Positions 3,411-64,000 of a stretch of DNA of 64,000 nt are shown in pieces. The notes under the pieces were generated by a model that made no database searches, was not told where the DNA came from, and saw nothing but the letters and a program-made list of their open reading frames with translations. The stretch comes from Orbicella franksi (taxonomy: Eukaryota), in the NCBI GenBank assembly GCA_964199315.1, contig OZ116712.1, positions 18,352,001 to 18,416,000 of the forward strand, read 5' to 3'. The position numbers and the translations under genes were made by a program. The stretch's first letter is position 1. Each line of letters begins with the position of its first letter.

Positions 3411-4949
3411 CACACGTCACACTGCATGGTTGCCATGACGACCACTGGTTCCAGCTACCATTCACTGATGATTAGGAGAAACCGTCCATGATGGGAAAGC
3501 TTTAAAAAGTGTATAAACTACTGAAGTTTTGAACTGATAAAACTTGAGCGGCTTATGCTCTGAAACGGCGTTGGAAAACGGTGTCTTTCTACAAAAAAAA
3601 AACTTCACGGTTCACGACAAAAAAGGTGTATGGTAATAAAATCCAATGGACTGGAGAAGCCAAGGGCTTTGTCGAGGCAGGTGCTCAATACCAGATAACA
3701 AATGTTCAGACCTAATGGAAACTAACATTTAGAACAGTTGGATGAGGAACCAAACGCTAATCATCCTACATAATTATTAGTTAGCTAAATGTAAGGGTTT
3801 AAATTTGTTTTAAATCAGATCTCAAGAAAATTCTTATTAGAATTTTTCTGATCGATCAACAATACAAGCTAACTTAACCTATGAAACAGCGTTTTAATCT
3901 TCATGTGCAGAAGCATGGGAACCATTATACGGTATGCTCTTACGCATCCATGACAAGTTCCCAGACTCTCAGACTTCTTGCCAGAGAGCCAAATTCCCTG
4001 TGAAGTGATCAACTGGTAACTTACCTTCAACAAAGCGGTAAACAAATATGGTCCATACATCTCCCACGTAATAATTCCATAAACAATTGTCGGATCGCCC
4101 ATGTCTGTTGTAAGTCATACTACCGTTCAGTCCACTCCAACACTCGTCGCGATATTCCACGCCAAAATACCGCAAGCCTTTCTTGTAGACTTTAGTAGCA
4201 CACTTCTGAATTATGGCTGCGAGTGACTTGGCCAAGCCTGTCTGGTTAACATGGTAGATTTTGATTAATCTTGGAAGAGCGCGCGGATAACTTTTATCTT
4301 TGAAACAACCGACTGGTTCATACGGAGGCAGTACTTTTGTATCTGTATAGCAAAGACCAGTTAATCATTTAGTAGAGAATTAGTCAAGCTATAAATTAAC
4401 AACCTACATAGCTGGCCGTTCTTGCTGAGTATTCCACGAGAAGTTCTCCATCATCCCATTTATCTTGCGGCATAAATTGTTGTTCGTGTACCTCTTCGCT
4501 GCTGTGTTTTATTTTGTCATCACGCTAGAAGCGGAGGGGCGCCCAGGCAAATAAGATGCGGCCATGGCCATATTAATGCAATTATAAAACATCCTAAAAA
4601 TCAAAGAGTAACTCAGCTCCAGAATGAAAAGCAAGGGGAGCATCAAAAAAAGGTGGAATCATTTTGAGGAGAAACCTTTCAAATAAGGACATCTAGCTAC
4701 CTTTACATTGGTGCAAATTGCAGCTCTCTGTGTAGATGTTTGTCCCGGGACAGTCCTTTCCGTTCCATTTTGGCGCTGGATTAGAGCATGTGCGAGTACG
4801 TATCCTGTGTCCCCTTCCACATGTCACACTGCATGGATTCCATGAGGACCACTGGCTCCAACAGCCATTCACTGATGATTAAAAGAAACAATCCATGACA
4901 TGACAGCTTTATGAAGTGTATAAACTGTTGACTTTTGGGGTTTTGTGAT

Positions 4950-5035
4950 CTACCTTTACATTTGTGCAAATTACGGCTCTCTGTGGAGATATTTGACCCA
5001 GGGCAATTCTCTCCGTTCCATTTTGGCGATGTGCG
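4950..5035 (-). pseudogene. Remnant 3' half of a TSP1 exon (no acceptor)
   Basis: [24 protein letters not shown] plus a donor. The 5' half is missing and one Cys is changed to Arg. A counterpart lies at about 51595-51675. Confidence 0.75.
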
Positions 5036-59812: not shown

Positions 59813-62800
59813 ATGAGGATTCTTTCCCGAGAGTTTTCCAAGCAAGGAATCGTTTCCAACGCAATCTTTCATTACGGATTGATGTTCATCGGAATCGTAA
59901 TACTACAAGCTTGGCCGAATGAAGGCATTTCGCAGAGCAAAACCTCACAGTCAAGTACGTATTTTCATAAGATACCGTTTTGAAAGCAACAACGGTGTTG
60001 AAATTTTAGCCTTATAATTAAGGATATTATATGGCCGCTCGGAGATATACGAAATTTCTCTTCGAGTGTCTTCAAAATGAGAAGAGAAATTCCGTATCTC
60101 CAAGCGACCATGTAATTTTCTTTTTATGATATAAAACTATCATAATACATAACGACGTTTTTAGCGATTTTCCGAAGATTTCCCACCACTTTGCGAAAAT
60201 TTCCGAAGATTCTCCGAAAGTAGTCCGAAGGCAAGACGAACGTTTCTGGAAATTTTACCAAAAGTTCCGAACATTTCCGAAAATTGCCGAAGATTGCCGG
60301 GGATGGATTGCCAAGTACTTCCGAAGAACATCCGAAGATATTTCGATCATACACCAACACATTTAAGTGCTAAGGGACAAAAATGAGATCACGCGTGTGG
60401 ATAAAAATGATATCCTAACATATAAGATGTCGGTTTTGATCTGCTACCACTCAAAATACAACTAAATATAACGAAAGTTTACATCAAACGCTTTTTTTCT
60501 GTCAGTTCTGTATCTTTTCTCAATCGCTCACTCAGAAACATTGTCCAGGTACACCCTTTTCAGGAAACGTTTAACATTAAAAATGATAATGTTTGTGGAT
60601 GTTTTAAATTTAAGCATCGAAAAAATCATCCCTGATTAGGATATGTTTCTTTTTTACAACGGAAACTCGCCCTTTTTTACAGGCTTAATATCAAGAAGTA
60701 CCCAACCGAAATGAAATCGACAAATTTCTCACGAGGAAATGTTCGTTGCAAAGCAAAGTGAACGCTGCTAACACACTGCAGCGTTACCCTGGTCTCAAAG
60801 ACCATGGTTTCAAGTACTATCTTCAAAATTTAGAGTCATTGTTTTACGGCCTTTCCTATATGCTTATACTAATAAATTCAACATGCCAGGGCCAAAATAT
60901 TAAAAGTTCTATAGTCCTAAGCTACTTACTGTCAGTTGTCGTGTTTATTGTTCTAGAGGATCTCTAACAAAGTTCACAAATCAGTGATGCGGTAACCCTT
61001 CTTGCCTTAGTGTGACAGATACTCATCAAATTAATTTTGCACAAGGCTTTGGACCTTTTGTTATGTCAATAAACAGCTTGTTGTATGCATGTCGATGTAT
61101 ATCTCTCCAAGAATTGACTGCATGAATTGTGTTTTATGAGTGTACCGATATGGCCATGGCAACCTGTTTGCCTGGGTGCCCTTCCCTTGCGTTCTCAAAA
61201 TACAAAACTAATTGCAAGATAAATGGAGAGCTGAAGACTTGAGGAATTCTCATGCAATGGGCAGCGAGAATCACAAGCCATGCAGGTTGGTTAATTACAG
61301 CTTCGAATTCTCCTCTGTAAGAAATGATGATATGGTTTTTTCTACACAGGTACGACGGTGCTGCATCCGTACGAACCAGTCGGTTGTTTCAAGGATGAAA
61401 AAGATCCACGCGCTCTACCAAAATTAGTCAAACGGTACTGGGTCAACGAGTCAGATTTGGCTAATTCCCTCGCAACCATAATTCAGAAGTGTGCTACTAA
61501 GGTGTATGAGAATGGCTTCTGGTATTTTGGCGTGGAATTTCGCCACGAATGCTGGAGTGGAGTGAACGGTAGCTTAACTTACGACATACATGGGCGATCC
61601 AACAGTTGTTTATGTGATCATGGCGTGGGATCTGTATGGACCATATTTGTTTACCGCTTTGTTGAAGGTTAGTTACCAGTTCACATGAAATTTAGCTTCC
61701 TGACAAATCTGAGAGTCTGAGAACTTGTGTCATGGATGGGTAAGAAAATGCTGTATAATGGTTCCCATGCTTCTGTACATCAAGGTTTAAAACACTAGTT
61801 AACATCATAGGTGAAGAAATGTTGCTGGTTTGTTTAATGATAAAGAATTTTCAAGCTTTCAAATTATTGCTAAATTTTGACAAGATATTCTCTTTCCTTG
61901 GCACCTGAGATCAGGTTTTCCATTCCTTTTACCGGTATAGCCAAGAACTTTCTGTGTTTAACCTATTTCAGGTAAAGAGGTCCAAGTTCGAAAAATTTGT
62001 ATGTAAACTGGTAATAAGTACCTGCCTAGATTAGTCTCCGGTTGCTCCAGTCCACTGGGTTGGAATAACGAATAATAACCATAAATCTTTTCGTCGTGAA
62101 CGGTGAAGTCTTTTTGTACAGAAACGCCATGCATGGTCATCTTAAAACGAAATCTTAGAGCATAAACTAATCAATTTTAACAATTCAAAACTTCAGCAGT
62201 CGATACCTTTTCTAAAGCTTTCATGTGATGAATTATTTTGTCTAATCATCAGTGAATGGCGGTTGGAGCCAGTGGTCGTCATGGCAATCATGCAGCGTGA
62301 CATGTGGAGGGGGAAACAGGACACGCTCTCGCACATGCTCCAATCCAGCGTCAAAATGGAACGGAAAGGATTGCCCTGGGACAAATATCTCCACAGAGAG
62401 CTGCAATTTGCACAAATGTAAAGGTAGATCACAAAAACTTTAAAAGTCAAAGGTTTATTCACCTTTAAATCTTCATTTCATGTGATGGATATCTTTCTCC
62501 TGATAATCAGTGAATGGTAGTTGGAGCATGTGGTCGTCATGGCAATCATGCAGTGTGACGTGTGGAGGGGGAAACAGGACACGTACTCGCACATGCTCTA
62601 ATCCAGCGCCAAAATGGAACGGAATGGATTGCCCTGGGACAAATATATCCACAGAGAGCTGCAATTTGCACAAATGTAAAGGTAGGTCACAGAAACTCAA
62701 AACTTCAAAAGTTTTTTCACCTTTGAACTCTTCATGTCATGGATAATGTTACCTCTGATCATCAGTGAATGGCAGTTGGAGCCAGTGGTCGTCATGGGGA

Positions 62801-64000
62801 CCATGCAGCGTGACGTGTGGAGGAGGACAGTGGACACGCACTCGCACATGCTCTAATCCAGCGCCAAAATGGAACGGAAATGATTGCCCTGGGACAAATA
62901 TCTCCACAGAGAACTGCAGTTTGCGCAAATGTAAAGGTAGATGCCTCTTTTGAAAGATTTTTCCAAAAATGATCCCGGCTTGTTAGTTAAGTAAAGTAAA
63001 GTAAAGTGAAGTAAAATCCTTTATTTAAAACACGAATATCGTTGTTGTTTTGAAGCTCGGTGCGTTCCTTGCTTAATCTTTTCATTTCAGAGCTGAAATA
63101 GTTTTTGATTTTCAGAATGTTTAATCATTTGTACCGATATGGTCATGAACCTTAGGCCCCCATTCTTGCAAGATGACAAAATGTAATACTGCGGCAAAGG
63201 GGTAAACGAGCGGCACTTAACTTCGCAAGATAAATGGGACTCTATATACAACCTTGTTAAATATTTTTGTTAGTCCAAGGGAAATAGAGCTTGTTTTTAA
63301 CGGTCGAGACTTGCGAGCCTCTCGTGAAATGCCCAGCAAGAACCACCAGCCATGCAGGTTAGCCTGACTTCTCTAATTATTGATGATCTGGTCTTTTCTA
63401 CACAGATACGTCGGGGCTTCATCCGTATGAACCAGTCGGTTGTTTCAAAGACAATTATCCACGCGCTCTACCATTATTAGTCCAAGAGTACTCTGTAAAC
63501 GAGACAGATTTGGCCAATTCATTCGCCAGCATAATTCACGCGTGTGCTACTGAAGTCTTTGAGATTGGATTCTGGTATTTTGGCGTGGAATATCGCCACG
63601 AGTGCTGAACTGGAGTGAACGGCGACATGACTTACCACAGACACGGACAATCCGACCGTTGTTTATGGAATTATAGCGTGGGAGATACATGGACCATATT
63701 TGTTTACCGCTTTGTTGAAGGTTAGTTATCAGTCGATCACTTCACACTTCACAAATATTTTTCTAACTAATATTATGTAAAATGATTAGCATTTGGGTCC
63801 CAAACCAGCTGATCTAAATATATTTCTTTCCGTTAGTTCTAAAAATTTGTAAACTGGTATTAAGCACCAGCCTTGATGGGGCTCTTGTCTTCACCAGTTC
63901 ATTGGATTGGAATACTAAATAAAAACTATAAACCTTTTTTTAAGTCTTTTTATACAGAAACGCCGTCTTAAAACACCGTTTACAAAGCATAGGCCGAGCA
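59813..64000 (+). pseudogene. RTK paralog B2, 5' part, with a nonsense codon in the second WSC-like exon (gene continues past the window)
   Basis: Exons 59813-59954, 61350-61667, 62253-62423, 62511-62681, 62766-62936, 63406-63720. TGA at 63606-63608 replaces the Trp of ECWSG. Confidence 0.85.
62985..63044 (-). mobile_element. Very short retroelement tail insertion, (TTTAC)n on the minus strand
   Basis: About 60 bp absent from the B1 intron (about 25475), flanked by TTGTT on both sides. Confidence 0.5.

Follow-up and report, generated by a model that had tools for sequence, protein, structure and literature searches.

A 64-kb stretch of the Orbicella franksi genome (C15:18352001-18416000, within 497 Mb; hereafter the window) carries genes for receptor tyrosine kinases (RTKs) of two types, A and B, whose ectodomains are built from WSC and TSP1 modules. 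We conclude, with a probability of about 0.6, that type A (genes A1 and A2) is a conserved, catalytically degenerating receptor subfamily of a coral WSC/TSP1 RTK cluster, that it is maintained at the junction with type B (genes B1 and B2), and that it acts with little or no catalysis of its own.

Exon models were built by hand and by projection, guided by six-frame translation, Pfam matches and a coral protein with a transmembrane segment and a kinase domain. This protein, P0019, served as splice template and as outgroup, and came from a search of representative proteins with the HRD exon of B1, in which the nearest matches were single-exon fragments. Positions are those of the window; negative numbers lie to its left and numbers above 64000 to its right. 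The intact type-A gene is A2: its 14 exons are all bounded by GT-AG and encode exactly 791 amino acids and a stop, the full frame that the first-pass annotation had claimed for it. The architecture of type A is signal peptide-WSC-TSP1-WSC-TSP1-transmembrane-kinase, and a decayed half TSP1 exon between the first two modules is left over from a longer ectodomain like that of type B. The parts of A2 are as follows.

43402..53128, minus strand: A2, intact type-A receptor of 791 amino acids (gene model)
53128-53002 (E1), 52186-51878 (WSC1), 51516-51346 (TSP1a), 50989-50672 (WSC2), 50112-49942 (TSP1b), minus strand: ectodomain exons of A2 (gene model)
51567-51668, minus strand: decayed half TSP1 exon between WSC1 and TSP1a (translation)
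48945-48780 (transmembrane), 48349-48171 (K1), 47662-47478 (K2), 47023-46931 (Kx), 46118-45984 (K3), minus strand: transmembrane and kinase exons of A2 (gene model)
45844-45654 (K4), 44366-44326 (K5), 43763-43667 (K6), 43594-43402 including the stop (K7), minus strand: last exons of A2 (gene model)
47622..47624, minus strand: alphaC Lys codon (hand-counted from the K2 exon boundaries)
45727..45728, minus strand: junction of the 8-amino-acid activation-loop deletion (hand-counted from the K4 exon boundaries)

That both types are RTKs is indicated by PF07714 matches on the kinase exons, HRDLAARN in A and B, a transmembrane exon and a hydrophobic N-terminal first exon; the nearest solved kinase structures are those of FGFR1/2. 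In the type-A kinase, three features are lost. First, the alphaC Glu is replaced by Lys in A2 and A1: a HMMER alignment sets A2 'fsEKmqlmk' against FGFR2 'LVSEMEMMK', whose second E we take to be the salt-bridge Glu of FGFR. Second, 8 amino acids are deleted from the activation loop, which removes the second VY(H) tyrosine; at the deletion site type A reads [10 protein letters not shown] followed directly by ARKLP, and type B reads [23 protein letters not shown]. The K4 exon of A1 is likewise 64 amino acids long. Third, 13 amino acids are missing from the beta2-beta3 loop of the N-lobe. By comparison, the 16 other kinases read in the cluster and on a contig of a second coral all have the alphaC Glu and an activation segment of 30-31 amino acids, as do relatives from Oculina and Stylophora and, by eye, Porites. 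The term degenerate, which the first-pass annotation had applied to the A2 kinase, thus holds for the alphaC Lys and the two deletions and fails for the GxGxxG loop (GEGAFG), the VAVK lysine, HRD, DFG, [11 protein letters not shown] and all C-lobe exons, which A1 and A2 retain.

The kinase exons of A1 lie outside the window, as had been supposed; we found them 1.7-7 kb to its left, and every peculiarity of A2 is common to A1, so that the degeneration of type A is not a private oddity of A2. A1 itself is interrupted by a Ty1/copia retrotransposon with long terminal repeats (LTRs).

3411..6490, minus strand: ectodomain exons of A1 in the window (exon projection from A2)
5' half of TSP1b ending at 3464, 4025-4342 (WSC2), 4701-4871 (TSP1a), 5233-5541 (WSC1), 6364-6490 (first exon with ATG), minus strand: individual exons of A1
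-1358 to -6966, minus strand: transmembrane and kinase exons of A1, outside the window (exon projection from A2)
-1236..3410 (1..3410 in the window), plus strand: Ty1/copia LTR retrotransposon, with a pol open reading frame (ORF) at 50-3151 and its 3' LTR ending at 3410 (Pfam RVT_2, rve and gag_pre-integrase)
C14:12079156-12082568 and C10:6707691-6711102: examples of other copies of this element

The 4.65-kb element sits in the membrane-proximal TSP1b exon of A1, inside the codons of CSVTCGGG, with a 5-bp target duplication, CACAC, at 3411-3415. With the element set aside, A1 has an otherwise intact frame of 791 amino acids, which argues that the insertion is recent and the sole lesion. Its two LTRs, at -1236 and 3213, are identical but for 2 of 188 positions, the pol ORF is intact (1033 amino acids), and the 3.4-kb stretch from pol to the 3' LTR has seven genome copies including this one, 98-100% identical; by these sequence features the element appears to have been recently active.

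Type-A orthologues are present in two other coral assemblies, L029 (European Nucleotide Archive, ENA, ERZ25878340) and L030 (ERZ26858540). L029 has the whole A architecture including the TSP1 remnant, with the alphaC Lys, the same beta2-beta3 and 8-amino-acid deletions, and DFG changed to DFR. L030 has an intact frame of 427 amino acids from the transmembrane segment to the stop, with the alphaC Lys, HRD changed to HRN, LAARN to LAATN and DFG to DFA, and a full-length activation loop. A further locus, L028, covers a canonical relative in its 3' half only and tells nothing about the architecture. Among fragments of the family in public assemblies, the alphaC Lys occurs in 7 of 81 scorable K2-exon fragments, and a search with the K4 exon of A2 returned canonical exons of 70 amino acids and two type-A-like ones that read 'DFALPR...LPMKW'. 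An exact look-up of the A2 K4 exon among the recorded fragment ORFs gave no match; the recorded ORFs begin with M (MSGKGF, MSRKGF) two or three residues inside the exon, and our guess is that a Leu codon was read as a start, A2 having CTG there. The four A sequences make up a clade with support of 100/100 and a long stem in a tree built from 26 kinases, and the canonical sequences of the L029 and L030 genomes fall outside that clade. The first-pass annotation, which read the degenerate kinase in A2 only, had named changes private to A2 as grounds for abandoning its view; instead, A1 shares all of them, and both coral orthologues have the alphaC Lys.

Pairwise dN/dS (omega) among the A orthologues is 0.36-0.41 at a synonymous divergence (dS) of 0.20-0.33, with a nonsynonymous share far under the neutral expectation (binomial p 1e-4 to 8e-7). 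Between A1 and A2 omega is 0.35 overall; their kinases show 0.9% nonsynonymous divergence, and the nine introns from the transmembrane exon to K7 diverge by 0-5%, roughly 2.5% overall in our own tally. On the A branch omega is 0.35-0.43, about twice that of Y or g166, two sequences close to A in the tree. Type A thus reads, at the sequence level, as a maintained lineage under purifying selection that is tolerant of the loss of catalytic residues. Indeed, the orthologues with HRN, DFA and DFR have open frames at an omega of about 0.4, which indicates that the lineage tolerates loss of catalysis, and such tolerance in a maintained receptor would be the signature of a kinase domain that works non-catalytically. 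Formally, a pseudokinase lacks at least one of the VAIK Lys, the HRD Asp and the DFG Asp (PMC13519141). The label pseudokinase-type, given to type A by the first-pass annotation, does not in this formal sense fit A1 and A2, in which VAVK, HRD and DFG are kept, but does fit the L030 orthologue with its HRN. That type A may be a pseudokinase in function, with no phosphotransfer or with altered nucleotide binding, is suggested indirectly by the alphaC Lys, the activation-loop deletion and the tolerance of HRN, DFA and DFR in orthologues. Judged from these comparisons, the pseudokinase-type reading appears better supported by the orthologues than by the window itself.

Runs of RNA and DNA in which window sequence occurs are labelled coral or coral metagenome. 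In one polyA RNA run, raw reads cover A-type exons at low depth, and spliced joints with CT..AC ends are spanned by 3-5 reads each at 45844/45984, 46118/46931 and 47023/47478; the 93-nt Kx exon was itself revealed by a spliced polyA read joint. These spliced reads over three A-type junctions show expression of the type, a point on which the first-pass annotation had made its proposal depend. In contigs of polyA RNA runs, the share of words found is 0.21-0.25 for A2 (exon fraction 0.26) and 0.17-0.19 for B1 (exon fraction 0.21), and in one polyA run both genes are represented at about their exon fraction, which is soft evidence. Separately, the repeats at 44600-45400 and 49200-49400 are covered very deeply by RNA, with tens of reads from the polyA run and thousands in contig depth, and many of these reads run on into unlike sequence; they look like transcribed interspersed repeats. 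The first of them overlaps a 636-bp insertion (44708-45343) in the K4-K5 intron of A2, which A1 does not have.

Type B has the architecture signal peptide-WSC-TSP1x3-WSC-TSP1-transmembrane-kinase. The two types therefore differ in their ectodomains as had been proposed, A having WSC-TSP1-WSC-TSP1 and the decayed TSP1. B1 has 16 exons with Pfam matches to TSP_1, PK_Tyr and a WSC-like domain, and both the gene model and the motif table agree with the canonical kinase ascribed to it earlier. In B2, a premature TGA in WSC2 replaces the Trp of ECWSG, a column that is invariant in the 12 WSC domains aligned; B1 has Trp there. All ectodomain modules are single symmetric phase-1 exons, and their sequence suggests that skipping of the exons with lesions (TSP1b of A1, WSC2 of B2) might still yield a shortened protein. 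About 1.4 kb upstream of each working B first exon lies a decayed duplicate of it, E1a.

17096..34244, plus strand: B1, intact RTK of 932 amino acids (gene model, all splice sites AG/GT)
17096-17237 (E1), 23834-24151 (WSC1), 24745-24915, 25002-25172 and 25255-25428 (TSP1), 25836-26150 (WSC2), 26499-26669 (TSP1), plus strand: ectodomain exons of B1
28105-28270 (transmembrane); 28913-29130, 29396-29580, 30347-30430, 31078-31212, 31375-31589, 32002-32042, 33880-33976 and 34049-34244 (kinase), plus strand: transmembrane and kinase exons of B1
59813..64000, continuing to 70903, plus strand: B2 (gene model)
59813-59954 (E1), 61350-61667 (WSC1), 62253-62423, 62511-62681 and 62766-62936 (TSP1), 63406-63720 (WSC2), plus strand: exons of B2 in the window
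63606-63608, plus strand: premature TGA in WSC2 of B2, in place of the invariant Trp of ECWSG
15723-15855 (B1) and 58455-58587 (B2), plus strand: E1a, decayed extra copy of the first B exon, carrying in-frame stops (translations)
6491-17095, no strand: head-to-head spacer of A1 and B1, 10.6 kb (gene models)
53129..59812, no strand: head-to-head spacer of A2 and B2, 6.7 kb (gene models)

The first intron of B1 also contains an inverted repeat (19247-20289 and 21816-22862; arms of 1.05 kb, 95.8% identical, 1.5 kb apart) that B2 does not have, the intron being 6.6 kb long in B1 and 1.4 kb in B2. It may be a foldback or long terminal-inverted-repeat element, or a local inversion-duplication.

The two pairs belong to a duplicated unit. 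Self-BLAST matches 3411-8947 to 50059-55529 at 95%, 12787-18429 to 55528-61161 at 93%, and 23700-26418 to 61210-64000 at 90%, which bears out the unit of about 43-47 kb, with a minus-strand A and a divergent plus-strand B, that the first-pass annotation had seen twice. Its description as a tandem array of pairs does not survive: there are just two units from one recent duplication, they lie inside a larger kinase cluster of the ordinary birth-and-death kind, and one gene is disabled in each copy. With A1 and B2 disabled, the only intact genes of the two units, B1 and A2, are arranged tail-to-tail, and no further gene was recognised between them. The cluster comprises 18 matches to K4-type kinase exons over about 350 kb (C15 18.166-18.519 Mb), oriented ++++++ ---- + - ++++++. 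Among these 18, the short (64-amino-acid) K4 exon occurs only in A1 and A2; of the 16 non-A copies, 12 had an open kinase frame at first pass and 4 did not, and every non-A kinase modelled in the cluster is canonical. To the right of the window, at about 99,600-105,400, Z1 has a B-type kinase that groups with B1 and B2 in the tree, and the K4-exon matches of the cluster include no short A-type exon near it, which indicates that duplication of B-type genes is not tied to A. Kinase dS is 0.013 between A1 and A2, yet 0.083 between B1 and B2, close to the 0.087 between B1 and Z1; the history of the duplication is therefore not that of a clean copy of one unit. Further along, g480 (C15:18480780-18480899, at about 128,780 of the window), one of the four copies without an open frame, has truncated K1 and K4 exons with a TAG in its K4 match; it is a dead copy and shows that gene death is ongoing in the cluster.

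The ATGs of the divergent neighbours are 10.6 kb apart for A1(-)/B1(+) and 6.7 kb apart for A2(-)/B2(+). In the coral of assembly ERZ25878340, we mapped eight family genes on a contig of 754 kb: six minus-strand genes at about 17, 29, 89, 170, 182 and 200 kb, then two on the plus strand, A with its ATG at 212,994 and a second gene at about 263 kb. There, A(+), once more at the change of polarity, stands head-to-head with a neighbour with a canonical kinase, N(-), with 6.4 kb between the first exons, and the first exon of N has the B-type 'SKTSQS' extension. The A/N spacer is collinear with 52.9-60.0 kb of the window at 69-85% identity, including the decayed E1a exon at its conserved position, which argues that the A/B junction is ancestral. 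The expected linkage of A and B in related species is therefore upheld for the head-to-head order and the collinear spacer in one other coral, and not for the identity of the partner, since N is not the closest kinase orthologue of B. Two further observations concern canonical family members: the start codon of N reads ATA (L037:3626-3628), and the kinase-insert intron of a canonical member of the other coral holds an RVT_1 ORF of 522 amino acids on the opposite strand (L034:12497-14065).

Of the two ectodomain modules, TSP1 (PF00090) is recognised at 57.9-58.8 bits against a cutoff of 21.6, with WxxW and CSVTCG motifs. WSC (PF01822) stays under the Pfam threshold (20.3-26.6 bits against 27.8) and is the sole family matched; searching PDB sequences with a profile of the WSC alignment gave nothing credible. 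A first AlphaFold2 (AF2) model from seven paralogues had a predicted local distance difference test score (pLDDT) of 56 and meaningless Foldseek matches, and was discarded; an alignment of 12 sequences with orthologues resolved this, giving a pLDDT of 76.6 and a predicted template-modelling score (pTM) of 0.73, with one of five models good. With this model the top seven Foldseek matches in the PDB are all WSC-bearing proteins (glyoxal oxidase, yeast Wsc1 7pz2, Kremen 5fws and others) at probability 1.0 and template-modelling scores of 0.54-0.61, and Swiss-Prot models of WSCD1/2, xylosyltransferases, SLG1 and Drosophila Wsck (rank 18) were also matched. In the predicted structure, the coral domain thus has a WSC/PAN-like fold.

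Full-length proteins with the same architecture, 48-62% identical to B1 along their whole length, occur in other corals: an 'unnamed protein product' of 878 amino acids in Porites lobata (P0158; 48% identical to B1), ACROYT_G034928 in Oculina patagonica (P0159; 62%) and 'Fibroblast growth factor receptor 1-A' in Stylophora pistillata (P0166). A 'Tie-1-like' fragment of Orbicella faveolata (P0180) is 82% identical to the B1 kinase. These proteins are alike in combining a WSC-like domain, TSP1, a transmembrane segment and a split kinase; all are canonical, with the alphaC Glu and a full-length loop, and none is of type A. Their annotations are automatic, and public entries for kinases of the family call them FLT3-, FGFR-, Cad96Ca-, Tie- or torso-like. 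We found no description of WSC/TSP1 RTKs or of cnidarian RTK pseudokinases in the literature; a survey of cnidarian thrombospondin-repeat (TSR) proteins reports other novel TSR architectures, with no kinase, and TSR proteins are implicated in how cnidarians take up dinoflagellate symbionts (PMC5446238).

We propose the following course of events. Type A would be an old subfamily that first lost the alphaC Glu, now Lys, and the beta2-beta3 loop; later losses would differ by coral, with the 8-amino-acid loop deletion in Orbicella franksi, DFR and the same deletion in the second coral, and HRN and DFA in the third. Throughout, type A would have kept its frame, splicing, expression and purifying selection, at the polarity switch of the cluster and head-to-head with a canonical B. 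In Orbicella franksi the A/B junction would have been duplicated recently (5-10% divergence), after which copia entered A1 and a nonsense codon arose in B2. Type A might then signal with little or no catalysis as a co-receptor, scaffold or damper, dimerising with canonical cluster members that have a like glycan- or matrix-binding ectodomain, in analogy to HER3 with EGFR/HER2. A functional pairing of A and B would be plausible. It is speculative to name the neighbouring B-type gene as the specific partner, or to see the ligands in glycans or TSR-binding surfaces of microbes or symbionts. In its boldest form, the proposal would be a conserved heteromeric coral receptor in which a canonical WSC/TSP1 RTK is joined by a head-to-head pseudokinase as allosteric activator or gatekeeper, sensing glycans or matrix/TSR ligands on microbes or symbionts, with three corals caught at successive stages of the loss of catalysis; we consider this distinctly unlikely as a whole.

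Several observations weigh against type A as a maintained, catalytically degenerating subfamily. Retention of the VAVK lysine, HRD Asp and DFG Asp in A1 and A2 means that, as far as sequence can tell, residual or unusual catalysis is possible. The omega of A (about 0.4) is not above that of the B1 branch (0.41-0.46), so that the selection data do not separate an active from an inactive kinase. At 47532, 47629 and 47630 the letters of the polyA reads are of A1 type, and the RNA is from a different individual or species; expression is thus shown for type A and not for a particular copy. The L029 A gene lacks the acceptor of the transmembrane exon (AG to TG, L029:8765-8768) and the Kx donor (GT to AT, 10640-10642), and may be decaying; there, the frame could be kept by an acceptor 9 nt downstream or by leaving out the 93-nt Kx exon. 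Within Orbicella franksi the tree does not join the kinases of A and B as sisters: A lies near Y, g166, g214 and g258, and B with Z1 and g505. On this placement we reject the view that the two types are simple mirror duplicates. At the junction, the N kinase falls in the sister clade of B1, B2, Z1 and g505, and the closest B orthologue, ERZa_263, lies on the 3' side of A; the orthology of the partner is blurred, perhaps by conversion or rearrangement. Spacer identity (69-85%) is about what the synonymous divergence (0.20-0.24) leads one to expect and hence gives no sign of a constrained shared promoter. Finally, wherever a cluster switches polarity there is one head-to-head junction and no more, and common descent accounts for finding it in both corals.

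Some of these points would equally suit a lineage-specific birth-and-death RTK cluster in which type A is divergent but catalytically competent, another residue standing in for the alphaC Glu and the shorter loop altering regulation, and in which its position near B is meaningless. The intact Gly-loop, catalytic motifs and C-lobe of A1 and A2, the similar omega of the A and B1 branches, the neutral level of spacer conservation, the fact that one gene per pair is already dead and the presence of large RTK clusters also on C1, C4, C6 and C12 (below) all favour it. On the other hand, the orthologues with HRN, DFA and DFR keep open frames at an omega of about 0.4, and no canonical relative read, from Porites to Stylophora, lacks the alphaC Glu or the full-length loop; we hold this explanation unlikely, if a serious contender.

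The first-pass annotation had proposed a paired-receptor recognition system. In its strong form, A and B would be an obligate pair of sensor/helper type that is co-regulated from the upstream region they share and that recognises microbes, symbionts or self as a heterodimer. The head-to-head junction with its collinear spacer of 6.4-6.7 kb is kept in the second coral, a degenerate A lies beside a canonical neighbour in both species, one polyA run holds exons of both A2 and B1, and a WSC fold with TSP1 would suit glycan or surface recognition, TSR proteins being implicated in symbiont uptake (PMC5446238). Against these stand the two units only, with A1 and B2 disabled and the intact genes tail-to-tail, a partner kinase that is not orthologous between species, and a B-type kinase, Z1, without a second short A-type K4 exon nearby. 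Diversifying selection on the ectodomain is likewise rejected, with an omega of 0.35 between A1 and A2 and of 0.55 over the first part of B1 and B2. An obligate pair is thus quite improbable. That type A consists of pseudogenes whose motifs erode neutrally and whose open frames are chance survivals would fit the copia in an A1 exon, the two canonical splice sites missing from the L029 orthologue and the different catalytic motifs lost in each species, but is made highly improbable by the intact frames (A2 with 791 amino acids, A1 minus the insertion, L030 with 427 from transmembrane segment to stop, and the kinase part of L029), by an omega of 0.36-0.41 at dS 0.20-0.33 (p<=1e-4 against neutrality) and by correctly spliced transcripts.

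Type A as a receptor subfamily losing its catalysis has partial parallels elsewhere. HER3 has HRD changed to HRN and has lost the alphaC Glu (PMC13519141). HER3/ErbB3, with EGFR/HER2, resembles type A as a conserved RTK paralogue without the alphaC Glu in which the fold is kept, and L030 has the same HRN; A1 and A2, however, keep HRD and DFG, the coral ectodomain is of WSC/TSP1 rather than L-domain/furin-like modules, and the coral genes form one tandem cluster. For ROR1/2, it has been pointed out that intact VAIK, HRD and DFG do not guarantee activity (PMC13519141). ROR1/2, PTK7/CCK4, RYK and EphA10/EphB6, all RTK pseudokinases, are alike in keeping a kinase domain for non-catalytic signalling; they belong to other families with other ectodomains, and the coral lineage is young, with stages of motif loss that vary by species. 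Drosophila Wsck (UniProt P83097, 'putative inactive tyrosine-protein kinase Wsck') is a single-pass receptor in which an N-terminal WSC domain and fn3 are joined to a kinase-like domain that is counted as non-catalytic (PMC2754085). It shares with the coral proteins a WSC receptor with a kinase-like domain, in line with its place among the structural matches; it differs in joining WSC to fn3 with no TSP1, Pfam giving no fn3 match in the coral proteins, and the coral kinases are nearest to FGFR1/2 and mostly canonical. Plants have head-to-head pairs of sensor and helper nucleotide-binding leucine-rich-repeat (NLR) receptors, such as RGA4/RGA5 and RRS1/RPS4. There too, two paralogous receptor genes diverge and one lacks canonical activity, and the coral adjacency is kept in a second species; the coral spacer of 6-10 kb contrasts with a short shared promoter, there is no integrated decoy, and the partner is not strictly orthologous.

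Beyond the pairs, the ORFs at 38381-38812, 41639-42004, 42226-42858, 36696-36983 and 6849-7226 have no Pfam match. Elsewhere in the genome, further tandem tyrosine-kinase clusters lie on C1 (28.4-28.9 and 34.9-36.2 Mb, more than 20 copies), C4 (25.37-25.68 and 29.06-29.11 Mb), C6 (7.97-8.16 Mb) and C12 (25.89-26.05 Mb), with exons 57-75% identical to the HRD exon of B1. From these matches, the Orbicella franksi genome appears to hold massive RTK expansions.

To our knowledge, receptor pseudokinases such as HER3, which are central to animal signalling, are almost all ancient and fixed. The coral-specific RTK cluster described here would be young, with three species at different stages in the loss of catalytic motifs (alphaC Lys with the loop deletion; DFR; HRN and DFA) while selection is kept. 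It may therefore offer a natural series for asking how a kinase turns into a signalling partner that does not act by catalysis. What looked like an array of pairs is, for its part, an assembly-level snapshot of gene birth and death. Finally, a WSC fold of carbohydrate-binding type and TSP1, joined directly to a tyrosine kinase, make these proteins candidate receptors for surface-recognition signalling in corals.

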